A DNA stretch of 47,104 nucleotides from assembly GCA_020536535.1 (NCBI GenBank), contig JAHLWZ010000922.1, positions 1-47,104 of the forward strand, read 5' to 3'. Positions within the stretch are counted from its first letter, which is position 1, and each line of letters begins with the position of its first letter. Made by a program: the position numbers and the translations under genes. The stretch comes from Pelomyxa schiedti (taxonomy: Eukaryota > Protista > Evosea). The notes below the pieces were generated by a model. It was given only the letters and a program-made list of their open reading frames with translations, ran no database searches and was not told the DNA's origin. Shown in pieces: positions 35,846 to 47,104 of the stretch.

Positions 35846-38800
35846 TCAAAACGGCCACTTCCAATTCCTCACTTCAGGCAAATCTTGTCCATTCTTGATG
35901 ATGTAGTTCTTGTGGTCAATGAGTTTACTCTTGAGCATTTCCTGTTGGGAAGAGGGGTGCTTAGGTTGCCGGAACGAAAGAAAAAGAACCGCGCACACAC
36001 ATAGACATAGGCACTGTTCTTGAGCTGCGGCAGACGGACAATGGCATCAGAGGCAAGAGTGTACCGATCAATCTGATTGAGCACGGCCATGTCGAAGGGA
36101 GTGGTTGTTGTGCCCTCTTCCTTGTAGCCTCTCACATGAAGGTTGGGGTGATTCTTGCGGCGATACGTGAGCCGGTGTATCAACCAAGGGTATCCATGGA
36201 ACACAAACACAATCGGCTTGTCAGTCGTGAACAGGAGGTCGAAATCCTTGTCGGCAAGACCATGTGGGTGCTCAACTGTGACAAAAGGGTAAGTGAGAAT
36301 TGTCAAGTGTGCGACAAAAGTTTACTTTGTGGTTGCAATGCCATCAGGTCAACAACGTTCACGAACCGGATGCGGATTTCTGGGAAATTCGACCGGAGAA
36401 TTTCGGTTGCTGCAAGGGCTTCCAGAGTTGGAACATCTCCACAGCTCGCCATCACCAAATCAGGCTCTGTTCCCTGATTAAGAAGTGGGCTGTTGTTCAG
36501 GTCTTGTGAAGGAGTTCTCGTGTGTGAAAGAAATACCTGGTCATTTGAAGCCCAATCCCATATTCCCAATCCTTTGGTGCAATGCCGAACTGCGTTGTCC
36601 ATGTCCAGAAACTGCAGTGATGGCTGCTTTCCTGCTATGATCAAATTCACGTAGTGCCTGCCAACGGGTGTTGTTAGCCGCCATTCTTGGCTGCTGTATA
36701 CAATCCACTTCCACTTCCACTTACTTTGAACGAAGACAATGATCAACAGTTGTCAGCAGGCAGTTTGCATCAGGGGGGAGATAGATTCGAATGACTTCAG
36801 CTTTCTTGTTCACAACGTGGTCAATGAACCCAGGGTCCTGGTGACTGAAACCGTTGTGATCCTGCGTGGAAGAACAAGCGCGCGCTAATTGAGAGAAGGG
36901 ATATGTTGATAGTTGGGACGTACCTGCCTCCACACGTGAGAGGTCAACAGGTAGTTGAGTGATGGAATTGGCCTCCGCCAAGGAATTTTCTTTGAGACTT
37001 TGAGCCACTTTGCATGTTGATTGAACATAGAATCCACGAGATGGATGAAGGCTTCGTAGCATGAAAAAAGCCCATGCCGCCCAGTGAGAAGATAACCTGA
37101 AGGAAAGAAATAAGTGGGTTGGTTACCCGCGCCAATAGTACAAGTGCAAGTGAACACAAACCTTCCAGCCATCCTTCCAGTGTATGCTCACTCAGCATTT
37201 CCATCACACGGCCGGTTCGAGAGAGGTTTTCATCCACATCCAATCTGTTCGCCATCCACGCGCAATCAGTGACCTCAAAAAGGGCACTCAGACGATTTGA
37301 AGCCGTTTCATCAGGTCCAAAGATCCGCATGTTGGAGTGAGCAGCATTTAATTGCATTGTATCACGTAAAAACCCTGCTGCAATTCTCGTTGCTTCCGCT
37401 TCCGTCGTTCCTTTCATTGTGAATTAAATCAAGAAAGAAGAATTCCGTGGAGAGGAAAACCTGGATGAGGGACTGGAAACGAGTAATCCCTGAAATCTGG
37501 CAGCCGCAAATCAAAACTCAGTTTGCCGCCGTTTGCATGCGGATTGCTCCCCATTCTTCGTGCACCCCTTTTTTGGGTTTTACTTTTTAGAGCAATCAAT
37601 TCAATTGCACTCAGTACTTTGGGGCAAGAGCTTGCAGGGAGGAAAGAAGTGTCCCATTCGAGTCAAATAAGTCTTCAGGGTGGTAAGATTTCAGCCATTC
37701 CTGCGGGGCGGGGGGGGTACAATTCAATATTGCTATTATGCGTCCAGAAAAGGACACTTGCCTCAAGCAACATGAGATGTTCGGGGTTTGTACGAACTTC
37801 CTGAAGGGGAACTTGGTGTGACCTCCAGGTGTCTTCAATTTTTTTCCCTGGCGGTGCCTGTTAAATACAGCAAACATAGGCCGTGTGGATATTTTACCAT
37901 CAACTTCCTTCGGACCAGTCCAACCCTTGGGAGTTTTCAATATTATCATGGGCCACTTTTTTGGGGTGACTTAATTGGAAGTTTCCCAGAGGAAGTGAGG
38001 TGCTTACTTGCGGTCTTGTGTTGTTGTTAGCGGCTTCTCTGGATTGCCTTTGTATCTCTCGTATCTCTTTCACTACAACCTCAAGTGTGGCAGCCATGCA
38101 TTGATGCACATGTACGGGGTCATTCCTTGTAAATGCAACAACAAGGTGACAAGAATGAAAGAAGTGTAATTGAAAAATACCCTTCCACCCAATAGGTCTT
38201 GTAACCATATCCGTAGAAAAGGGCGTCCAACTCCGCATCAGGAATCCTTGCCAATACCGCGGGGTTTGCGATTTTATATCCATTCAGATGCAAAATAGGA
38301 AGCACAGTACCTTGAAGGGGAGAAATAAAAGGAGGGAGAGGGATTTTCAGAGCTTGCTACATGATGATGGAGTTACCATCACGTGCGGGATTCAGAAATT
38401 TGTTGGAGTGCCATGAGGTTGCCAGAGGTCCCGTTTCAGCTTCTCCGTCACCGACAACGCACACCACCAGCAAATCAGGGTTATCAAAGGCGGCGCCATA
38501 CGCATGTGAAACAGAATACCTTGTTGTTAGTCAAGAATTGAAACTAAGAGGCTGAGATGAGGGGTACCCAAGTTCGCCGCCTTCGTGTATGGATCCAGGA
38601 ACTTCTGCTGCAGTGTGGGAGGGAATACCTCCAGGGAAAGAAAACTGCTTGAAGAGCTTCCTCATTCCGTCCTTATCTCTGCTGACCGTGGCATAGTGGT
38701 CTGAATAAGATCCTTCCAGATAACTTAAGAGTGTTAATCAAACTCAGTTTTGGCACCACTTTCGTAGCGTACGTGTTGGAAACCATTGCAGGACCACCAT

Positions 38801-39150
38801 GACCAGGACCACAAACGAAAATCATGTCAAGGTCATACTTAATAATCACACGATTGAGATGGGTATATATCAAATTCAATCCAGGTGTAGTCCCCCAATG
38901 ACCAAGGAGCCTTTTTCCCACGGAATTAACTTCAAGTTGAAATTTAAGATGGTTCGCACCTTGGCTTAATATGCTCAGGCTTGAGAGGTTCCAAAAGAAG
39001 AGGGTTATCCATCAAATAAATCTGCCCAACAGAGAGGTAATTGCCAGCACTCCAATAGGCGTGAATTGCCTTGAGCTCCTTATCACCCAGTATTCCATTT
39101 TTATACTCACTGACACCATCTGTTACACCAACAACTCTTTTCTCCATCAT
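35846..39150 (-). CDS. xfp: Xylulose-5-phosphate/fructose-6-phosphate phosphoketolase (TPP-dependent)
   Basis: [111 protein letters not shown] and [17 protein letters not shown], ending EVRNWKWPF*. Many short introns. Confidence 0.97.
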
Positions 39151-39563: not shown

Positions 39564-42500
39564 ATGTTGTCGTCATCTTCATCTTCGTCACAGGGGAGAT
39601 CTTGCAGATTCCGTCCGTCGGGAGGATCGTCGTCGGCAGGCGACGAGGCGATACGCGTCGCGGCGGCGTCGGTGGAATTGATGGTGAGTGGCGCGGGAAG
39701 ATTCACGCTCACGACGGTGACGTTGGTGGCGCAGAACGTCACATCGAGCGAATTGGAGGCTGAACTTGGTTAGTGTTCTTCGTTTGCTTTGTTTTTTTTT
39801 TTTTTTTTGTTTTTTTTCTTTAACCGCTGGATTTTTTCCGTGACATTTTTAATTCCAGAATTTCCCATTGAGGACAGTATGGCCTTCTCTCATTCTACAG
39901 TTGCTGGTGTTGTATTTTGAAGTTCATCTTGTGTAAATAGATTCCACCGTTTGTAGTTATGCTGTAGATATTGGGGACAGAATGGTGTCTGCTGTTGTTT
40001 GTGGCAAGCAGGAAGCCAGGCGTGCATTTGAACAAGAAATTTTTGAACAAAAAATCGTGCACACAACAAGGACCAACCAAGTCACTACAACAACGCAAGC
40101 CACCATTCTTGAAAAAGTCCAGGGCAACTATTTTCGAGTATTTGAGCCCCCCTTGATCATGGGTTTCCTAATGGTCTCTGTAGACAAGAATATATCCAAT
40201 CCACCCTTTGGGAAGGCGTGTTGTTCAGGTACAGGCCTGTGACTATAAAACACTATCATTGTAATCTTTATTTTTTCTCCCATACAGGTTGTGTATCTCA
40301 CCGAGGTTGATACATGTGCTTTTCAAGCACACTTCAGTTTACACATTCCAACTGTCGTATCCACTTGCAGTTTTTCTGCTCAAGTATTAAAACCAGTGTT
40401 CCATATTGGAGAATTGGAGGCGCCCCTATTAGTCTGTACAGGTTCTAAACTGGATTCTCTAAGAGCAGGTTTCAAATTATTGTCACTGTGGATTTGCCAA
40501 AAATCTCAAAATATGTTCAGAACTAAAAGATTCAGGGATGCACTGGTCATCCAATTTCACCCAAAACGAAGTGACACCAGATTGGGAAATATCAGTGCTG
40601 TACCCAAAGCAGGAGTTAATATATTCCACTGAAAAGGACACCAATGGGAATAGTTTTTTCTGTCTGTCCGTGATTCCTCCACAAGTGCCTACATTCTCTA
40701 GCTCTGAAGAAGGTTGCCCATTTCTAGTAGTCAATTGTCTCTCACTTGTTTCAAGCGTCAATGAAACGAATTGGGCTATGGTGGGATTGCTCCTTATCAC
40801 AGTGCCATGATGTGCGCAGCCCACTTGGCACCAATAAGTGTTCCCTCTTGATATCGCTTGTCAAGCAAATGTGCCCTGTAGTGGTTGATGTATTCACATT
40901 CAGCAATGTTATGAATGAATATGCTACCGTGACTGTTTTAAGACCCTCTGATACAATGCATGTCACCCAAGTATTGGACAGTATAGAATACGACGGAGCC
41001 ACCAATTTTGGATGTTTGAATTTTCAACGGGCTAACAGTGCTTCTAAATATACCCTGCATGTTGTTGAGAGTGACGGCTTAGGCTCTCTTCATGGGTAGT
41101 ATAAATTTTCCATGTGGAAAATTAAATCTCACTCCCTTCCAAGACTGGACACAAGTCCTCATATTTCTCGTGATGTTCCCATTTTCACTATTGGGTGCCC
41201 AACTGTGACGGGCTTGGTTAATCATGATACCATGAAGAGGATTTCTCTGCCCAGTGGGGGTTCACACTTCAGTCTCTCGCCTACTAGTGATACAACTTCT
41301 ATTGCCCGACAGATCACATCACCATCAAAGTTTTGTCTCAGCAGAATCATTTACGAACCTTCTCACATGGCTGATGTTGTGCCATGTGCGCCTTATGTGA
41401 TTCCTTCTGGTACTGCAAGAGCAATTACACTCACTGGCAGGCTATTAACTGAGGGTGAAATAAACATAACATTGGAGTGGGGGTATCCACAAAAACCTTG
41501 CACAAGCAGAAACACATACAGACTACCAAATTCTTTTGAAGCACCAGTTTCTGCACTTTTGTGCAAGTATACTCAGAGTAAAATTTGATAAAAATATAAT
41601 GATATTATCACAAGGTTCTGGGCTAAAAAGACTATTGAAGGCCTTTATCTGGAGAATACAGAAAATTCACGAAGACGAATTGTAGAGCTGTGTTCAAACT
41701 TTGGATTTGTTTCAGACAATACCTCCCTTATATTGCTTGGTTTAAAAAAAAATTTGATACCTCTCTATCTGCCTGACAGTAGTTGTTTTAGAGTCCCTGG
41801 AACAGTACCTGAAATATAAAATCAAACCACCACCCAGTCTCCCAGAAGTTCTATCACAATGTACTTTTCATACAAAGTTTATTTCTTACTCTGCATCAGA
41901 CAACCTCAAAATGTTGGAATTTGAAGCAGAGAAGTCTAAAAAGGAAATGGAAAAGAAGGCATATGTTAATTCCCTCTGGAAAAAAAGGTCTGGTTGGTGG
42001 AAGTGCAGTTACTCTGGGTCCATGTAGGTACCCTGAAAACCTGACTAAGCTTATACTTACTTTAGCTGGCAATCCAACATACTTCATCAGTATCTTCCAA
42101 AGCCTGGCAGTGTCTGGGTGGATGAAGAATTGGTCGGCTTCATTCCTGGAAAAGAGTGCGAAGAAGCTGCTGGAGTAGTATCATTATTACTTTCTCGCTT
42201 TGACAGGTAAGAACAATAACCATTTACCTCAGCTCATCAAACAGTAGTAAAAGCCTGCTGTCTGATGTAAAATCGTCCACCACTACAGTGTCTTCTGCCA
42301 TCACTTCATTGCTTGAAAACATCCCAAAGATTAAACTTCAAATGGAGAACCCAGTGACTGGCTCGATGTCTGCTGCACTGAATGACACACTATCTGCAAC
42401 AGAAGAAGTGGTACCTCACTTCACTTCCTCCAAAACATTGCCACTTTCTCTAGATGGGTTATGCTCTCACACACAAAGTATGCCTGCCTAATATCCGGGA

Positions 42501-45500
42501 GATGCTTAAGCACTTGCATCAGTTTCTTATCACTGGACAGTGCGCCGGTAATATCTATAAACCTTTGTACATACCCACATCTTGAAATACAGTGGATAGA
42601 ACAAGAGATACTCCCCGTGACTCTGACCTCCTCTCTTCAATCGAAGAGGTACAAGTTGAATTGGAACTAGCCTTACAAAGAAGAGCCTCTGAAATCCTTA
42701 GAGAAGATAGTGTCTTAGGAATAAGTTTTGGAAGAAGTTATATTGCCGCATGTGGTATAAGACAGAAGGGAACCCAAGTTGTATGCTCCTGCTTTTTTTT
42801 TTTTTTTTTTTGTTTTTTGTTTGTTGTTTTAAAGGAAAAAGGTTACATTTCCTGATGGGTTTGAGACTCTACCAACAGTCATTTCTTTCATGGATGATGG
42901 CATTTCATTTGGTGAAATTGCTATGAAGGGGAGGCACGATAACCCCTCAAATACTGTAGACCATATTCGTGACTTCCTTGCCAAAGAGTAAACCAATGAT
43001 TTCTACATCGCAAAATAAGAGTTCCTAGAGGGTCGGATGATATTCACTCATTTCCATTTGACGTAACAGAAAAGGATGGGAACCCTGTTATATCTGTATC
43101 TGTGCGGCATGAGAGGATGACTTATCTTCCCTTGGATGTAAGTTGCCCTCCTATCATCCAAATGTGGCACCTATGGTCCTTCAGCCCAAAAAAAGTTTGG
43201 GAACTTGATGGAATTCAGGGGTTGCCCATTTATCTGTTCGTAGTACTGTCATTAAGCCATGTTCTCAGATTGCAGTGAAGCTGTTATCTCATGTTAAAAC
43301 CTCAGCGGAAAACTTTTTGTCTTGCAACGTCAAATCAAGTGTTCTTACTGTGCCTCGTATGCTGTGACACATTTTCCGACTGTTTGTTTCACTCACATTT
43401 TGTTGTCAGCATATTTTGATGATGCCCAGAGGAGAGCTTTAAAAGATGCTGGAACCTTGGCTGGATTGAATGTGCTGCGAATAATAAACGAACCTACTGC
43501 AGCTACAGTTGCATATAATCTTGGCAGCCTTCCTGGGACTACCAAAGTGCTTGTAGTTGACTGTGGGGCTACCACCACCTCAGTCACAGTTATAGTCGTT
43601 GAGGTTGTTTCTTTCAGTTTTCTTCTTTCTTACTCCTGCCAGGATGGGACATTTGAAGTAATTGGGTGGGCAAGATCTGATGTGGGCGGTTGCGATTTTG
43701 ATAAGTGTCTTGTGACGGACTGTTTGAACTACCTGTTACGGACTGAAGGCATGGACCTGTCTTCCAACAGTGAGGCAGTTCACAAGTTGACTCTTGCTTG
43801 CATTGAAGCTAAGCATGCTCTGTCATCAAGAACAAACGTATCTCAATTTTTGCAATATCTCTGATTGACCCATTGTTTCTAGACCCAAGTTTATATTGAA
43901 GGCCTTGTATCGTACAGTGATTTTAATCGTGAAATATCACGTCCATATTTTGAACACTTGTGTGCTCCATTATTTTCGAGACTACTTGAGTGAGTGGCAA
44001 GAGAATTTTTTTTTTTTTTAACTACCTGGCAGAACAATGAAGAACTCGTTAAAGGAGTCAAAAACTGAGGCTGCAGAAATTGGACATGCTGTTTTTGTGG
44101 GAGGATCCACATTGATGCCCAAGCTTGTTAATATTGTTGAGGCATGTTATTCCCTTTTTCTCCACCCCAAATAAACGTTTTCTCTCACAGACTTTTGTTC
44201 CAAAAGCGAAGCTACATAACTCTCTTAATCCTGCGCACGCAGTAGCCACCGGTGCCTGTATGCAAGCTTGTATCCTCACGGGGCACGGTCGTTCTTCTTC
44301 AAGTGGAGTCCAAGATCTGTTATTATTAGACGTCACACCATTATCGCTTGGTATAGCATGTTCTACCACCAGCTGTATTGGTAACCTGTTCTCATTCCAT
44401 CCTGTTGCATTCTTATGTGCTTTCCAGGGGCGGACTCAAACAATAGAATGGCAGTTTTAGTCCCAAGGAATACCACTATTCCAACCAAGAAATCTGCCTA
44501 TTTTCCTATCCCCCAGAATTTAGGGCAGATTAAAATCGAGGTAATTCGATATCTTGAATGGGAGGTTGTTGGTAAAACAATTTACCAGGTCTATGAAGGT
44601 GAAAGAGCAGATGTTCGCAACAACAACCGTCTGGGTGCCTTCTTTGTTGATTGTGGACATGTTGGAGGCCAAGTTGAAGTAACTTTCGATATCGATGCCA
44701 ATGGAATTCTAGTTGTAAGTGCTGTAAATCCTAGTGTTGCCAGGCGTTGTCAGATTACTATAACAAATGATAAGGGAAGGTCAGCCTCTTTCTTACTTTT
44801 TTTCTCCTAAAATGCTTCAGGTTGAGCAAAGAAGATATTGAAAGAATGGTTGCCGAGGCTGATAACTATTCGAGTTCAACTCCAAAAACCTTTTCGGCTC
44901 CGGGTACTAGGGCTCATACCCCTGTTCCTGCCGCTGCACCTGCTCCGGCTCCTAGGGCCTACTGTGGAGCTGCATCGCCCAAAATTCCGTGCAGAAAGAA
45001 GGTCCAAAAAAAAGGTGCATCTGTTGAAAAAGAGGTCCTGGAAGAAGAGGAAGGAGAAGTACCACCCCAGCAGACCCTAGGATCAGAAGACTTTCCTGCA
45101 CTATACATGGATGATGAGGAACAGAAGGATACAAGTTCATTTTCCCCCGGATTTGAACCACAATTACCCACACTAATTGCGATGGTAAATGAAAGTTCCT
45201 TTCTATACTCGTTAATAAGATTCAAGTTACAACAAAACTGTGACACAATCCCCACCACCGCCTTGGATAATCTCATGGCAATCATGGGGAAGAAGTTTAG
45301 TCCCCTGGAAATTGTTGTCCCATTCCTTTTTTTTTTTTTGACTTATCACCTTCCAGGGGAGCATTGTGTCAAAAGGAAATACCATTTCTCTCGAGGCACT
45401 GGGACAACTACTCAATCCCATACGACCACACCCTAAGCCATGCTTCAGACCATCAAAGGAAAACAGCATCTACCTTCCTCCTGCAACTGCGGGAGTGAAT

Positions 45501-46969
45501 GTTATAGTTTACCAACCACAGATACTAGGGCCTTGGTCGTATTCACTCTTCTGCTCTCCCTGTCCTTATCAGGTAGATTTGATTTACACTTCAAAACATG
45601 TGGTGTTTCTCACTGTGAGCAATGTAGACATATCTGATAATGAGAAATGATTATTCCCATGACCCTGTTTTCTTTTTTGAGTGCAGTAGCTTCTTCCAAG
45701 CGTTTCCCTCACTGGAGATGCAACAAATAGCCATCACGGTTATTTCCAACCTTGCTGAAGTATGTGTTTTGATATAATCCGAAAAAAATCTGACCTCAGC
45801 AGTTAGAGCTGGAATCTATTGAAGCAGTGCGATTGGTTGGGTATATGCTAGATTATTACGGGATGACAGAGCAAGCAGTAGAATTGTTTAAATATGCCCT
45901 TGACCTGAAACCGGAAGGTAAAGAATTTTCATTCAAGAAACCAAACATAATTTTCTCATTCCCACAAGAACCTCAATCACACCGAGACTATGCACTGGCC
46001 GTTGCTCAGAGGGGCAGGCCAGGGGATTATACGCGAGCTGTTGAAGAACTTTCCAGGGTTCTACTGGGTGATTGGAACATTAGATTCACACAAATTGAAG
46101 CTACTGCGTTAATGGTAGTAGCTGTAGGATTCATTGGCTTTGAGTAACTCTTTTTAGGAGTTAGGAAGAATAACACAGCTGGCTGAGGCGGTGGGGGAGA
46201 GAGTGGATTCAAGTGCAATCCCATTGGAATTTTGTGCCCTACCCATTAAAATGAGGGTTGTTCTCACATGGGCAACGGACTTGTCTGACCTTGAGCTTTG
46301 GGTAGAAGATGTATGCACCTCTACCCAATCCTACTTGTATTCCATCCACCACACAACAACAAAAAAAGCCATCTGGAGAAATCTGCTACCCAATGCACAA
46401 CCTTACACGACAAGGTGGGCTGCTCTCCAAGGATTTTACTCATGGCTATGGTTACCTTTCCTTTAGTTGCACTTTTCCTTAACTTATCATATAAAGGTCC
46501 CCAAGAGTTTTTGTTGCGTGAAGCGAAACTCGGGATATACAAAATCAAAGGTTTTCTTCATTCACATTACCCTCTCATTTACAAATTTGTCACAGTGAGG
46601 CACTTCTCATCATACCCGGGGCACAAGACTACTGCCGCATTTGTTCACATTTTCACCAACTTCTGTTCCCAGCGGCCCAATGAAAAGGAGCAACACCACA
46701 AGGCAGCCGTCTGGCTAGGCTGTGAGCAATCAACCACCAACAAGCCATTTACTGTGGATGTCGCAACAGTGAGGTTTGGTGACAGCACCAAAGAAATACA
46801 TGCAGAGGAAGTTAGGCTGCAGTATGAAGCACACAAGGAAAGGTCCACTTTGCTGAAACCACTCACGAATCCTATTCCAGCCAACAACAATACACCACCC
46901 CCAGCACAACGACCCACAACCGATCCGGACTATGAGGAAGTCGATCTCCCGTATGACGAAGTTGATTGA
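39564..46969 (+). CDS. Multidomain protein: VIT - vWA-like - helical - Hsp70 (NBD+SBDbeta) - TPR - DUF2135/YfaP-like
   Basis: VIT: ELEAEL|[32 protein letters not shown]. vWA-like: [39 protein letters not shown]. Hsp70: [87 protein letters not shown]2135: [55 protein letters not shown]. Confidence 0.8.
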
Positions 46970-47104
46970 GCTAAAACAAAAAGTATTGGAACAAAGTCTA
47001 GTTTTTGGGGTACGACTTCGGTGGAGACCCAATAAATCGAGTTTTCCCCAGATAACTCGAGTTATTTCTGCATGAATTCGTTTTCCACATCGAGTTTACC
47101 CCTG

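Follow-up and report, generated by a model that had tools for sequence, protein, structure and literature searches.

The window analysed here is a 47,104-nt stretch of contig JAHLWZ010000922.1 from Pelomyxa schiedti, an anaerobic archamoeba with 7.5 introns per gene (PMC8887013). On its forward strand, positions 39564-46969 can be read as one frame of 35 exons and 34 short GT..AG introns, with 1,891 codons and a single terminal stop. This is very likely a single gene encoding both flanks of a VIT-vWA-TPR-DUF2135 scaffold and an Hsp70 between them, with a predicted protein length of ~1,750-1,890 residues. The order of parts is a VIT domain, a vWA-like region with a DxSxS motif, a conserved region running to KRSGWW, a linker, Hsp70, a Pro/Ser/Ala-rich linker, a TPR-like part, a DUF2135-type region and an EEVD-type tail. 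The explanation that we hold with moderate confidence, on the sequence evidence set out below, is that the Hsp70 guest is a non-enzymatic look-alike, mounted on the scaffold in one expressed gene and used as bait or adaptor.

Gene model and transcript evidence

The features of the gene, all on the forward strand, are as follows:

39564..46969 (+), whole gene as modelled, with the stop codon at 46967-46969; corresponds to the published Pelo_14211
39564-39940 (+), first three exons, placed by eye
39940..40077 (+), central part of the VIT domain (Pfam PF08487, E 3.8e-5, 24.3 bits against a 26.5-bit cut-off, on a single exon)
40756..41095 (+), vWA-like exon, with DCSLS (a DxSxS motif of the metal-ion-dependent adhesion site type) at 40785-40799
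41144..42023 (+), conserved post-vWA region, ending in the family motif KRSGWW (41983-42000)
42066-42206, 42248-42410, 42454-42547 and the start of 42593-42780 (to 42717) (+), N-side linker exons, frame open
42411..42453 (+), inferred 43-nt intron at the SATEEV/MGYAL joint (GT..AG, phase 0, in frame; composition score +4.6 bits)
42718..44316 (+), Hsp70 nucleotide-binding domain, divergent (Pfam; exon-wise alignment to Pelomyxa cytosolic Hsp70)
44317..44851 (+), LLLLDV linker, substrate-binding beta domain and first lid residues, well conserved
44852..45572 (+), C-side linker, Pro/Ser/Ala-rich, in place of the helical lid (RNA contig X2 record 6 to 45303; composition)
45314..45356 (+), inferred 43-nt intron separating the Hsp70-linker contig from the TPR-DUF2135 contigs (GT..AG, phase 0; score +8.6 bits)
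45628..46114 (+), TPR-like part of the C-terminal half (tblastn with P0153 E 2.3e-14 and with C292 E 1e-6; introns all RNA-confirmed)
46158..46760 (+), DUF2135-type region, split by three introns (tblastn with P0153 and C292; PQEF and GIYKIK/VRHF motifs)
46931..46966 (+), doubled EEVD-type tail, the true C-terminus of the fusion (motif scan)

The RNA evidence comes from contigs of four single-cell RNA-seq runs from one study, aligned over 41000-46990. Seventeen GT..AG introns of 39-55 nt were seen spliced in these contigs, including three in the post-vWA region (41096-41143, 41567-41614 and 41861-41899; a fourth there, 41740-41779, is inferred) and three on the N side of the Hsp70 (42024-42065, 42207-42247 and 42548-42592). 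Contig X1 record 1 extends from the vWA region across five introns as far as 42383, and overlapping contigs cover 45357-46918. Contig X2 record 6 extends from 44301, including LLLLDV, across four introns to 45303 and thereby connects the substrate-binding domain of the Hsp70 with the linker that follows it. The original prediction had joined the exons in frame on both sides of the Hsp70; two of its joints, CA/VDRTRD (intron 42548-42592) and PYQ/TYLIM (intron 45573-45627), are spliced in RNA, and the third, SATEEV/MGYAL (42411-42453), is in frame and intron-like, without RNA.

The contigs from the four runs leave 42384-42486, 42687-43711, 43990-44300 and 45304-45356 uncovered, and one short GT..AG intron is enough to carry the frame across each of these gaps. 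The intron at 42411-42453 is the one link between the N-terminal half of the scaffold and the Hsp70 that lacks RNA, and it is bridged in the published model. We scored composition as intron versus exon; confirmed introns had a median near 4, and all 170 GT..AG windows inside RNA-covered exons scored ≤2.9. Because the scores of 42411-42453 and 45314-45356 lie above every one of these exon-internal controls, both segments are intron-like. A cDNA contig starting at 45357 is preceded by T, as the spliced form would be, where the genomic base is G, although this is a weak point. Neither the first Hsp70 exon (42593-42780), which runs from the linker into Hsp70, nor exon 45357-45572 contains a Met, and each must therefore be preceded by another exon. 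In contigs that are otherwise spliced, two introns demanded by homology are still present (41740-41779 in X1 record 1 and 46311-46368 in X1 record 4), and lack of splicing in a contig at this locus thus does not speak against an intron. These single-cell libraries commonly contain retained introns or unfinished transcripts.

The spliced protein was assembled by script solely for the frame check and for motif placement. Upstream, four introns of the model were taken from the published model and two were placed by eye. The ATG at 39564 is the putative start, and the published Pelo_14211 starts at the ATG at 39982, within the VIT domain. A shortest-path search for a unique first-exon model was ambiguous, with thousands of equal paths, and from 39982 onward the model is settled by the published one alone. 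Exons upstream of 39982, read from the ATG at 39564, would complete the VIT domain by eye, without significant similarity over 39564-39981; the similarity of exon 1 to VIT was not significant. The only long intron of the model, 43138-43268 (131 nt), is the best fit to the Hsp70 homology and has an exon-like composition (-6.8 bits); a micro-exon or another joint may be concealed within it. Just upstream of the gene, the minus-strand exons at 38531-39150 (-) are phosphoketolase-like, and that gene and the fusion gene diverge.

In the 2022 P. schiedti genome paper, the first ~400 amino acids of Pelo_14211 are identical to the translation from 39982 (PMC8887013). Table S2 of that paper gives 14 HSP70 copies, ten of them in the cytosolic clade (PMC8887013). 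Pelo_14211 begins with VIT-vWA exons, yet it is assigned to the cytosolic HSP70 clade, and the fusion goes unremarked in the paper (PMC8887013). Since Pelo_14211 starts with VIT-vWA exons and is classed as an HSP70, the published Augustus/PASA/EVM model, as documented there, already joins the N-terminal half to the Hsp70. The gene model was public beforehand, and the fusion architecture has had no remark until now. A search of a literature library returned no description of the fusion or the architecture and no paper mentioning DUF2135. The original claim of an undescribed architecture stands as regards the literature searched, but the gene model itself had already been published. The record is corrected in one respect, as one of the ten counted P. 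schiedti "cytosolic HSP70 paralogues" is not a free chaperone.

The Hsp70 guest and its displaced tail

A nearly whole Hsp70 had been proposed to sit at the linker position of the scaffold, and this was upheld: the Hsp70 exons occupy 42718-44851 (+), between KRSGWW and YLIMRNDY, almost certainly in one gene with the flanks. Pfam PF00012 matched seven stop-free pieces within 42833-44807 (profile positions 28-504, best E 1.1e-33). In the nucleotide-binding domain, intron 43838-43882 is RNA-confirmed and the other introns are inferred from frame and homology; introns 44381-44427, 44541-44588 and 44780-44820, further downstream, are spliced in X2 record 6. Identity to the Pelomyxa cytosolic Hsp70 is 46% (201/433 aligned residues), with the best exons at 51-56%, and it is unevenly spread, at ~55-65% in the beta domain and ~30% in the first lobe of the nucleotide-binding domain.

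The catalytic and phosphate-binding set (Asp10, Thr13, Lys71, the Gly-rich phosphate-2 loop and Asp206) is not kept, and several nucleotide contacts besides Asp10, Lys71 and Asp206 are replaced. GIDLGTTY has become GISFGRSY, FDLGGGTFD has become VDCGATTTS and NPDEAVAYG has become NPAHAVATG, and further replaced Hsp70 motifs read EIAMKG and GGSTLMP in the guest. In Hsc70 mutagenesis, loss of Asp10, Lys71 and Asp206 abolishes hydrolysis. The guest is probably unable to hydrolyse ATP. Glu175 (in NEPTAA), Asp199, the adenosine motif VGGST, LLLLDV, the beta-domain motifs and ITITNDKG are kept. The helical lid is absent, as Hsp70 homology ends at the first lid residues and a Pro/Ser/Ala-rich linker follows; DDEEQK (45110-45127) is the only lid match, a possible remnant, and it is weak (E 0.46).

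The motif GRLSKE and the EEVD tail mark the guest as the eukaryotic cytosolic Hsp70 type, and it appears to derive from the amoeba's own cytosolic Hsp70 lineage. The canonical Pelomyxa cytosolic Hsp70 genes have very few introns, with exons of 457-546 codons (L016/C816 and others), and the nested copy has at least 13 introns. An intron shared with canonical Hsp70 was considered near VIT/CPAYF; the two positions differ by 8 nt and we make no claim. Elsewhere in the genome, short and partly disrupted Hsp70-like fragments (C768:1286-1447, C1080:15172-15333 and C797:86229-86336) match a nested exon at 59-75% over 36-51 residues. When 1.84 billion representative proteins were searched with an Hsp70 exon, no closer relative was found, and the long matches were tandem Hsp70s or unrelated fusions (Ig, GFP, zinc finger), none with VIT, VWA or DUF2135.

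The tail is the sole [DE][DE]VD-stop in the six frames of the window. The same scan found an IEEVD-stop in canonical Pelomyxa Hsp70 loci, and [DE][DE]VD-stop was absent from the 18 sister loci scanned. By arithmetic, the chance of a [DE]EVD end is ~3e-5. A free C-terminus is what the TPR clamp reads; an Hsp70 placed within a loop can therefore keep its EEVD only at the end of the whole protein, and an EEVD at the C-terminus of the fusion fits one polypeptide meant to look like Hsp70.

Scaffold relatives and sister genes

Relatives of the scaffold outside Pelomyxa were found only as two guest-free metagenome proteins, P0153 and P0154, each of 1,002 amino acids, with VIT (54-163), TPR (773-828) and DUF2135 (938-985) domains and, after an RTAWW motif at 592, a linker rich in Ala, Pro and Ser. 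P0153 matches 45800-46352 at E 2.3e-14 (tblastn), its own DUF2135 scores 41.4 bits with Pfam, and its VIT domain matches the VIT exon at E 1e-4 (BLASTP). Within the genome, the guest-free paralogue C292 matches 41607-41762 (E 4e-4), the KK..WW stretch (E 4e-4), 45830-46111 (E 1e-6) and 46366-46452 (E 4e-4). It has a Gln/Met/Pro-rich linker within one 479-aa exon, and its C-terminal open reading frame reaches 39.6 bits for DUF2135 in Pfam (cut-off 22). The vWA-like exon is matched by the sister locus C469 (tblastn E 4e-8 over 40767-41090). Pfam VWA gave no match on single exons, Pfam TPR gave weak single-exon matches at 45794-46144, and Pfam PF09906 (DUF2135) gave no match on single exons of the gene, which is explained by the intron that splits the DUF2135 domain. 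Intron 46311-46368 in the DUF2135-type region is inferred.

The gene shares with P0153 and P0154 the order of its parts: a probable VIT domain, a DxSxS region, an R..WW motif, a low-complexity linker, TPR-like motifs (SNLAE, EPQS and RF..IE) and a GYGPE/DUF2135 end. It differs from them in that a linker of ~130 amino acids rich in Ala, Pro and Ser is replaced by ~900 amino acids with Hsp70, and in its 34 introns and added EEVD tail. Since the flanks match C292 and P0153-type proteins, the Hsp70 lies exactly at the linker, between KRSGWW (41983-42000) and YLIMRNDY (45628). Both halves stand in one polypeptide with a variable linker after R..WW in P0153, in C292 and in the sister gene product Pelo_6792. 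In the Atlas, the TPR-DUF2135 half falls nearest to bacterial clusters. With exon 41145-41564 as query, the Atlas yielded weak leads alone (scores ≤0.83). The original prediction had described VIT-vWA-like and TPR-DUF2135 parts within single bacterial proteins, separated by a variable linker, and P0153/P0154, C292 and the bacterial Atlas clusters bear this architecture out. A lateral origin of the scaffold would be plausible. The best VIT match of the genome, C841:30370-30693 (-), lies in a stop-free frame of 1,308 codons and may represent a VIT gene without introns or a contaminant contig.

A search of the genome with the C-terminal open reading frame of C292 returned ~18 further loci, many with a VIT match on the same strand 3.5-7 kb upstream. 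In these sisters the guest gap lies between a W(K/Q)RR..WW motif and the TPR-DUF2135 half, and the following guests were identified:

C757, ubiquitin and E2 (Pfam)
C1277 and C267, Ras family (Pfam)
C907, C-terminal domain (CTD) repeats of Rpb1 of RNA polymerase II (Pfam)
C530 (Pelo_6792), a PRP1_N piece (NCBI protein)
C184, SKIP and a BBP-type KH domain, NCBI name 'Branchpoint-bridging protein' (NCBI protein)
C919 and C266, actin pieces below VIT matches
C923, a tubulin piece above TPR-DUF2135 matches

C940 is likewise counted among the sister loci with a guest in the same gap. In Pelo_6792 the guest is flanked on both sides by scaffold that matches P0153, all within one 1,249-aa exon. The guests of C757 lie at L035:5996-6226 and L035:5588-5881. 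The E2 guest reads HPAVNSNQSLNME where E2 enzymes have HPN...C, that is, HPA for HPN and Asn at the position of the catalytic Cys, and the ubiquitin guest ends in LRLRGS instead of LRLRGG (all by eye); both guests look deliberately inert, judging from these residues. A further sister, C1082 (L036:3545-5743), has a 733-codon guest exon without a Pfam match. The Hsp70 gene shares with its sisters the scaffold and the position of the guest; the guests differ, and among the loci scanned the EEVD end occurs in the Hsp70 member only. From its sequences, the family looks like a Pelomyxa expansion of a bacterial-type VIT-vWA-TPR-DUF2135 scaffold whose central loop, normally of low complexity, carries copies of core eukaryotic proteins.

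Explanations of the fusion and comparison with known systems

As a displayed look-alike, the guest would no longer run the ATP-driven cycle, given the replaced Asp10, Lys71, Asp206 and several contacts and the missing lid, and the surfaces by which Hsp70 is recognized would still be on display: the interdomain linker, the beta domain that binds peptides, and the EEVD tail. It could then act as bait or adaptor for Hsp70 binders (co-chaperones, clients or foreign factors that target Hsp70), and the vWA/DUF2135 scaffold would serve as a common output part. The fusion has an internal logic, with enzyme motifs lost, recognition surfaces kept and the EEVD at the real C-terminus. The dead enzyme, the kept binding surfaces, the displaced EEVD and the sisters with other, sometimes disabled, hub proteins together favour a displayed look-alike over a working chaperone machine. 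Several points weigh against this explanation. The bait or adaptor role is putative, and the loss of ATPase activity is read from motif changes alone; the well-kept beta-domain and linker motifs would also suit a working holdase. The Pfam cut-offs for VIT, VWA and DUF2135 are unreached on single exons, RNA spans neither 42384-42486 nor 45304-45356, and no contig spans the whole boundary from flank to Hsp70. No orthologue was found outside the P. schiedti genome, so conservation over time cannot be shown.

An alternative is that the protein is a working built-in chaperone, in which the Hsp70 would cycle or hold clients captured by the VIT/vWA or TPR/DUF2135 parts. The kept interdomain linker, beta-domain motifs, NEPTAA and VGGST fit such a role, and partners of the Hop or CHIP type could be attracted by the EEVD tail; however, GIDLGTTY, DLGGGTFD and other ATPase motifs have given way to other residues, the protein has no helical lid, and the actin, tubulin, Ras, Cys-less E2 and CTD-repeat guests at the same spot in the sisters point to a shared display logic and not to chaperoning. 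We consider this role unlikely, and the self-contained client-capture or quality-control machine that had been suggested initially is weakened by the same replaced motifs, missing lid and other guests. It is less likely still that the gene is a recent exon-shuffling accident or a decaying pseudogene without a function of its own. The lack of an orthologue elsewhere, the degenerate catalytic motifs and the two introns retained in RNA contigs would agree with decay, but the 1,891 codons are open, including ~390 linker codons without homologues (~1e-8 by chance, by arithmetic), and the gene is expressed and spliced. Conservation is also selective, with the beta domain well above the first nucleotide-binding lobe, the EEVD tail is doubled, and the 46% identity to the nearest kin indicates that the guest is old; we regard decay as very improbable.

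The transcript gap at 42384-42486 bears on another alternative, in which two neighbours were wrongly joined. Here a VIT-vWA gene would read through 42411 to a TAA at 42489-42491, and an Hsp70-TPR-DUF2135 gene would start at the ATG at 42454, immediately after the proposed acceptor site. Merging of neighbouring genes is an occasional error of gene predictors. Against this, the coding regions of the two genes would share 38 nt, with no space between them for a promoter or untranslated region, the composition of 42411-42453 is intron-like beyond every exon-internal control, and no poly(A) loose ends are reported there in the RNA contigs. Moreover, the guest-free relatives and Pelo_6792 hold both halves, and in the latter case the guest as well, in one exon or protein. 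Two separate genes are accordingly an improbable explanation, if a better one than decay. A word-based protein search with the read-through open reading frame (42204-42488) found nothing, and the similarity of the read-through frame to locus L011 was rejected as coding evidence, as it is to the translated pyrimidine-rich intron of a Rab-like gene.

The look-alike explanation of the Hsp70 gene can be widened to the whole family, which might be a built-in decoy or bait system with catalytically dead hub copies on a common vWA/DUF2135 scaffold; we regard this extension as doubtful. The system would sense or absorb an attack on the copy, and the hubs would be actin, tubulin, small GTPases, ubiquitin/E2, Hsp70, the RNA polymerase II CTD and splicing factors, which would be favoured targets of bacterial or viral factors. 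If so, the Hsp70 member with its EEVD tail would be a sentinel for attacks on the chaperone network, and a system of this kind would be reasonable for a cell packed with prokaryotic symbionts. The Hsp70 gene and its sisters point to a scaffold family displaying copies of the most conserved proteins of the cell, which would be a new use of domain insertion. As far as we could find, a natural Hsp70 nested in another protein is itself undescribed.

The guest is like cytosolic Hsp70 (Hsc70/Ssa; Pelomyxa C816, C199, C650 and C751) in its collinear nucleotide-binding and beta domains and its C-terminal EEVD-type motif. It is unlike them in its 46% identity where alignable, its replaced catalytic and nucleotide residues, its lack of a helical lid and its embedding in another protein, and ~560 residues separate its EEVD from the beta domain. 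In mode of action, the proposed bait recalls plant NLR integrated decoys and the bait region of alpha-2-macroglobulin, in which a look-alike or bait lies within a larger sensor or trap and varies between paralogues. The likeness, a host-protein look-alike in a larger protein, would be purely one of analogy: unlike those systems, this protein has no NB-ARC/LRR or macroglobulin domain, and exon-wise Pfam scans of the gene returned no NB-ARC, other signalling ATPase or LRR. Ssz1 and HSPA14 are atypical, non-cycling relatives of Hsp70, free-standing and part of the ribosome-associated complex. They offer a comparison in how the guest may work, with an Hsp70 fold kept for binding and not for the ATPase cycle.

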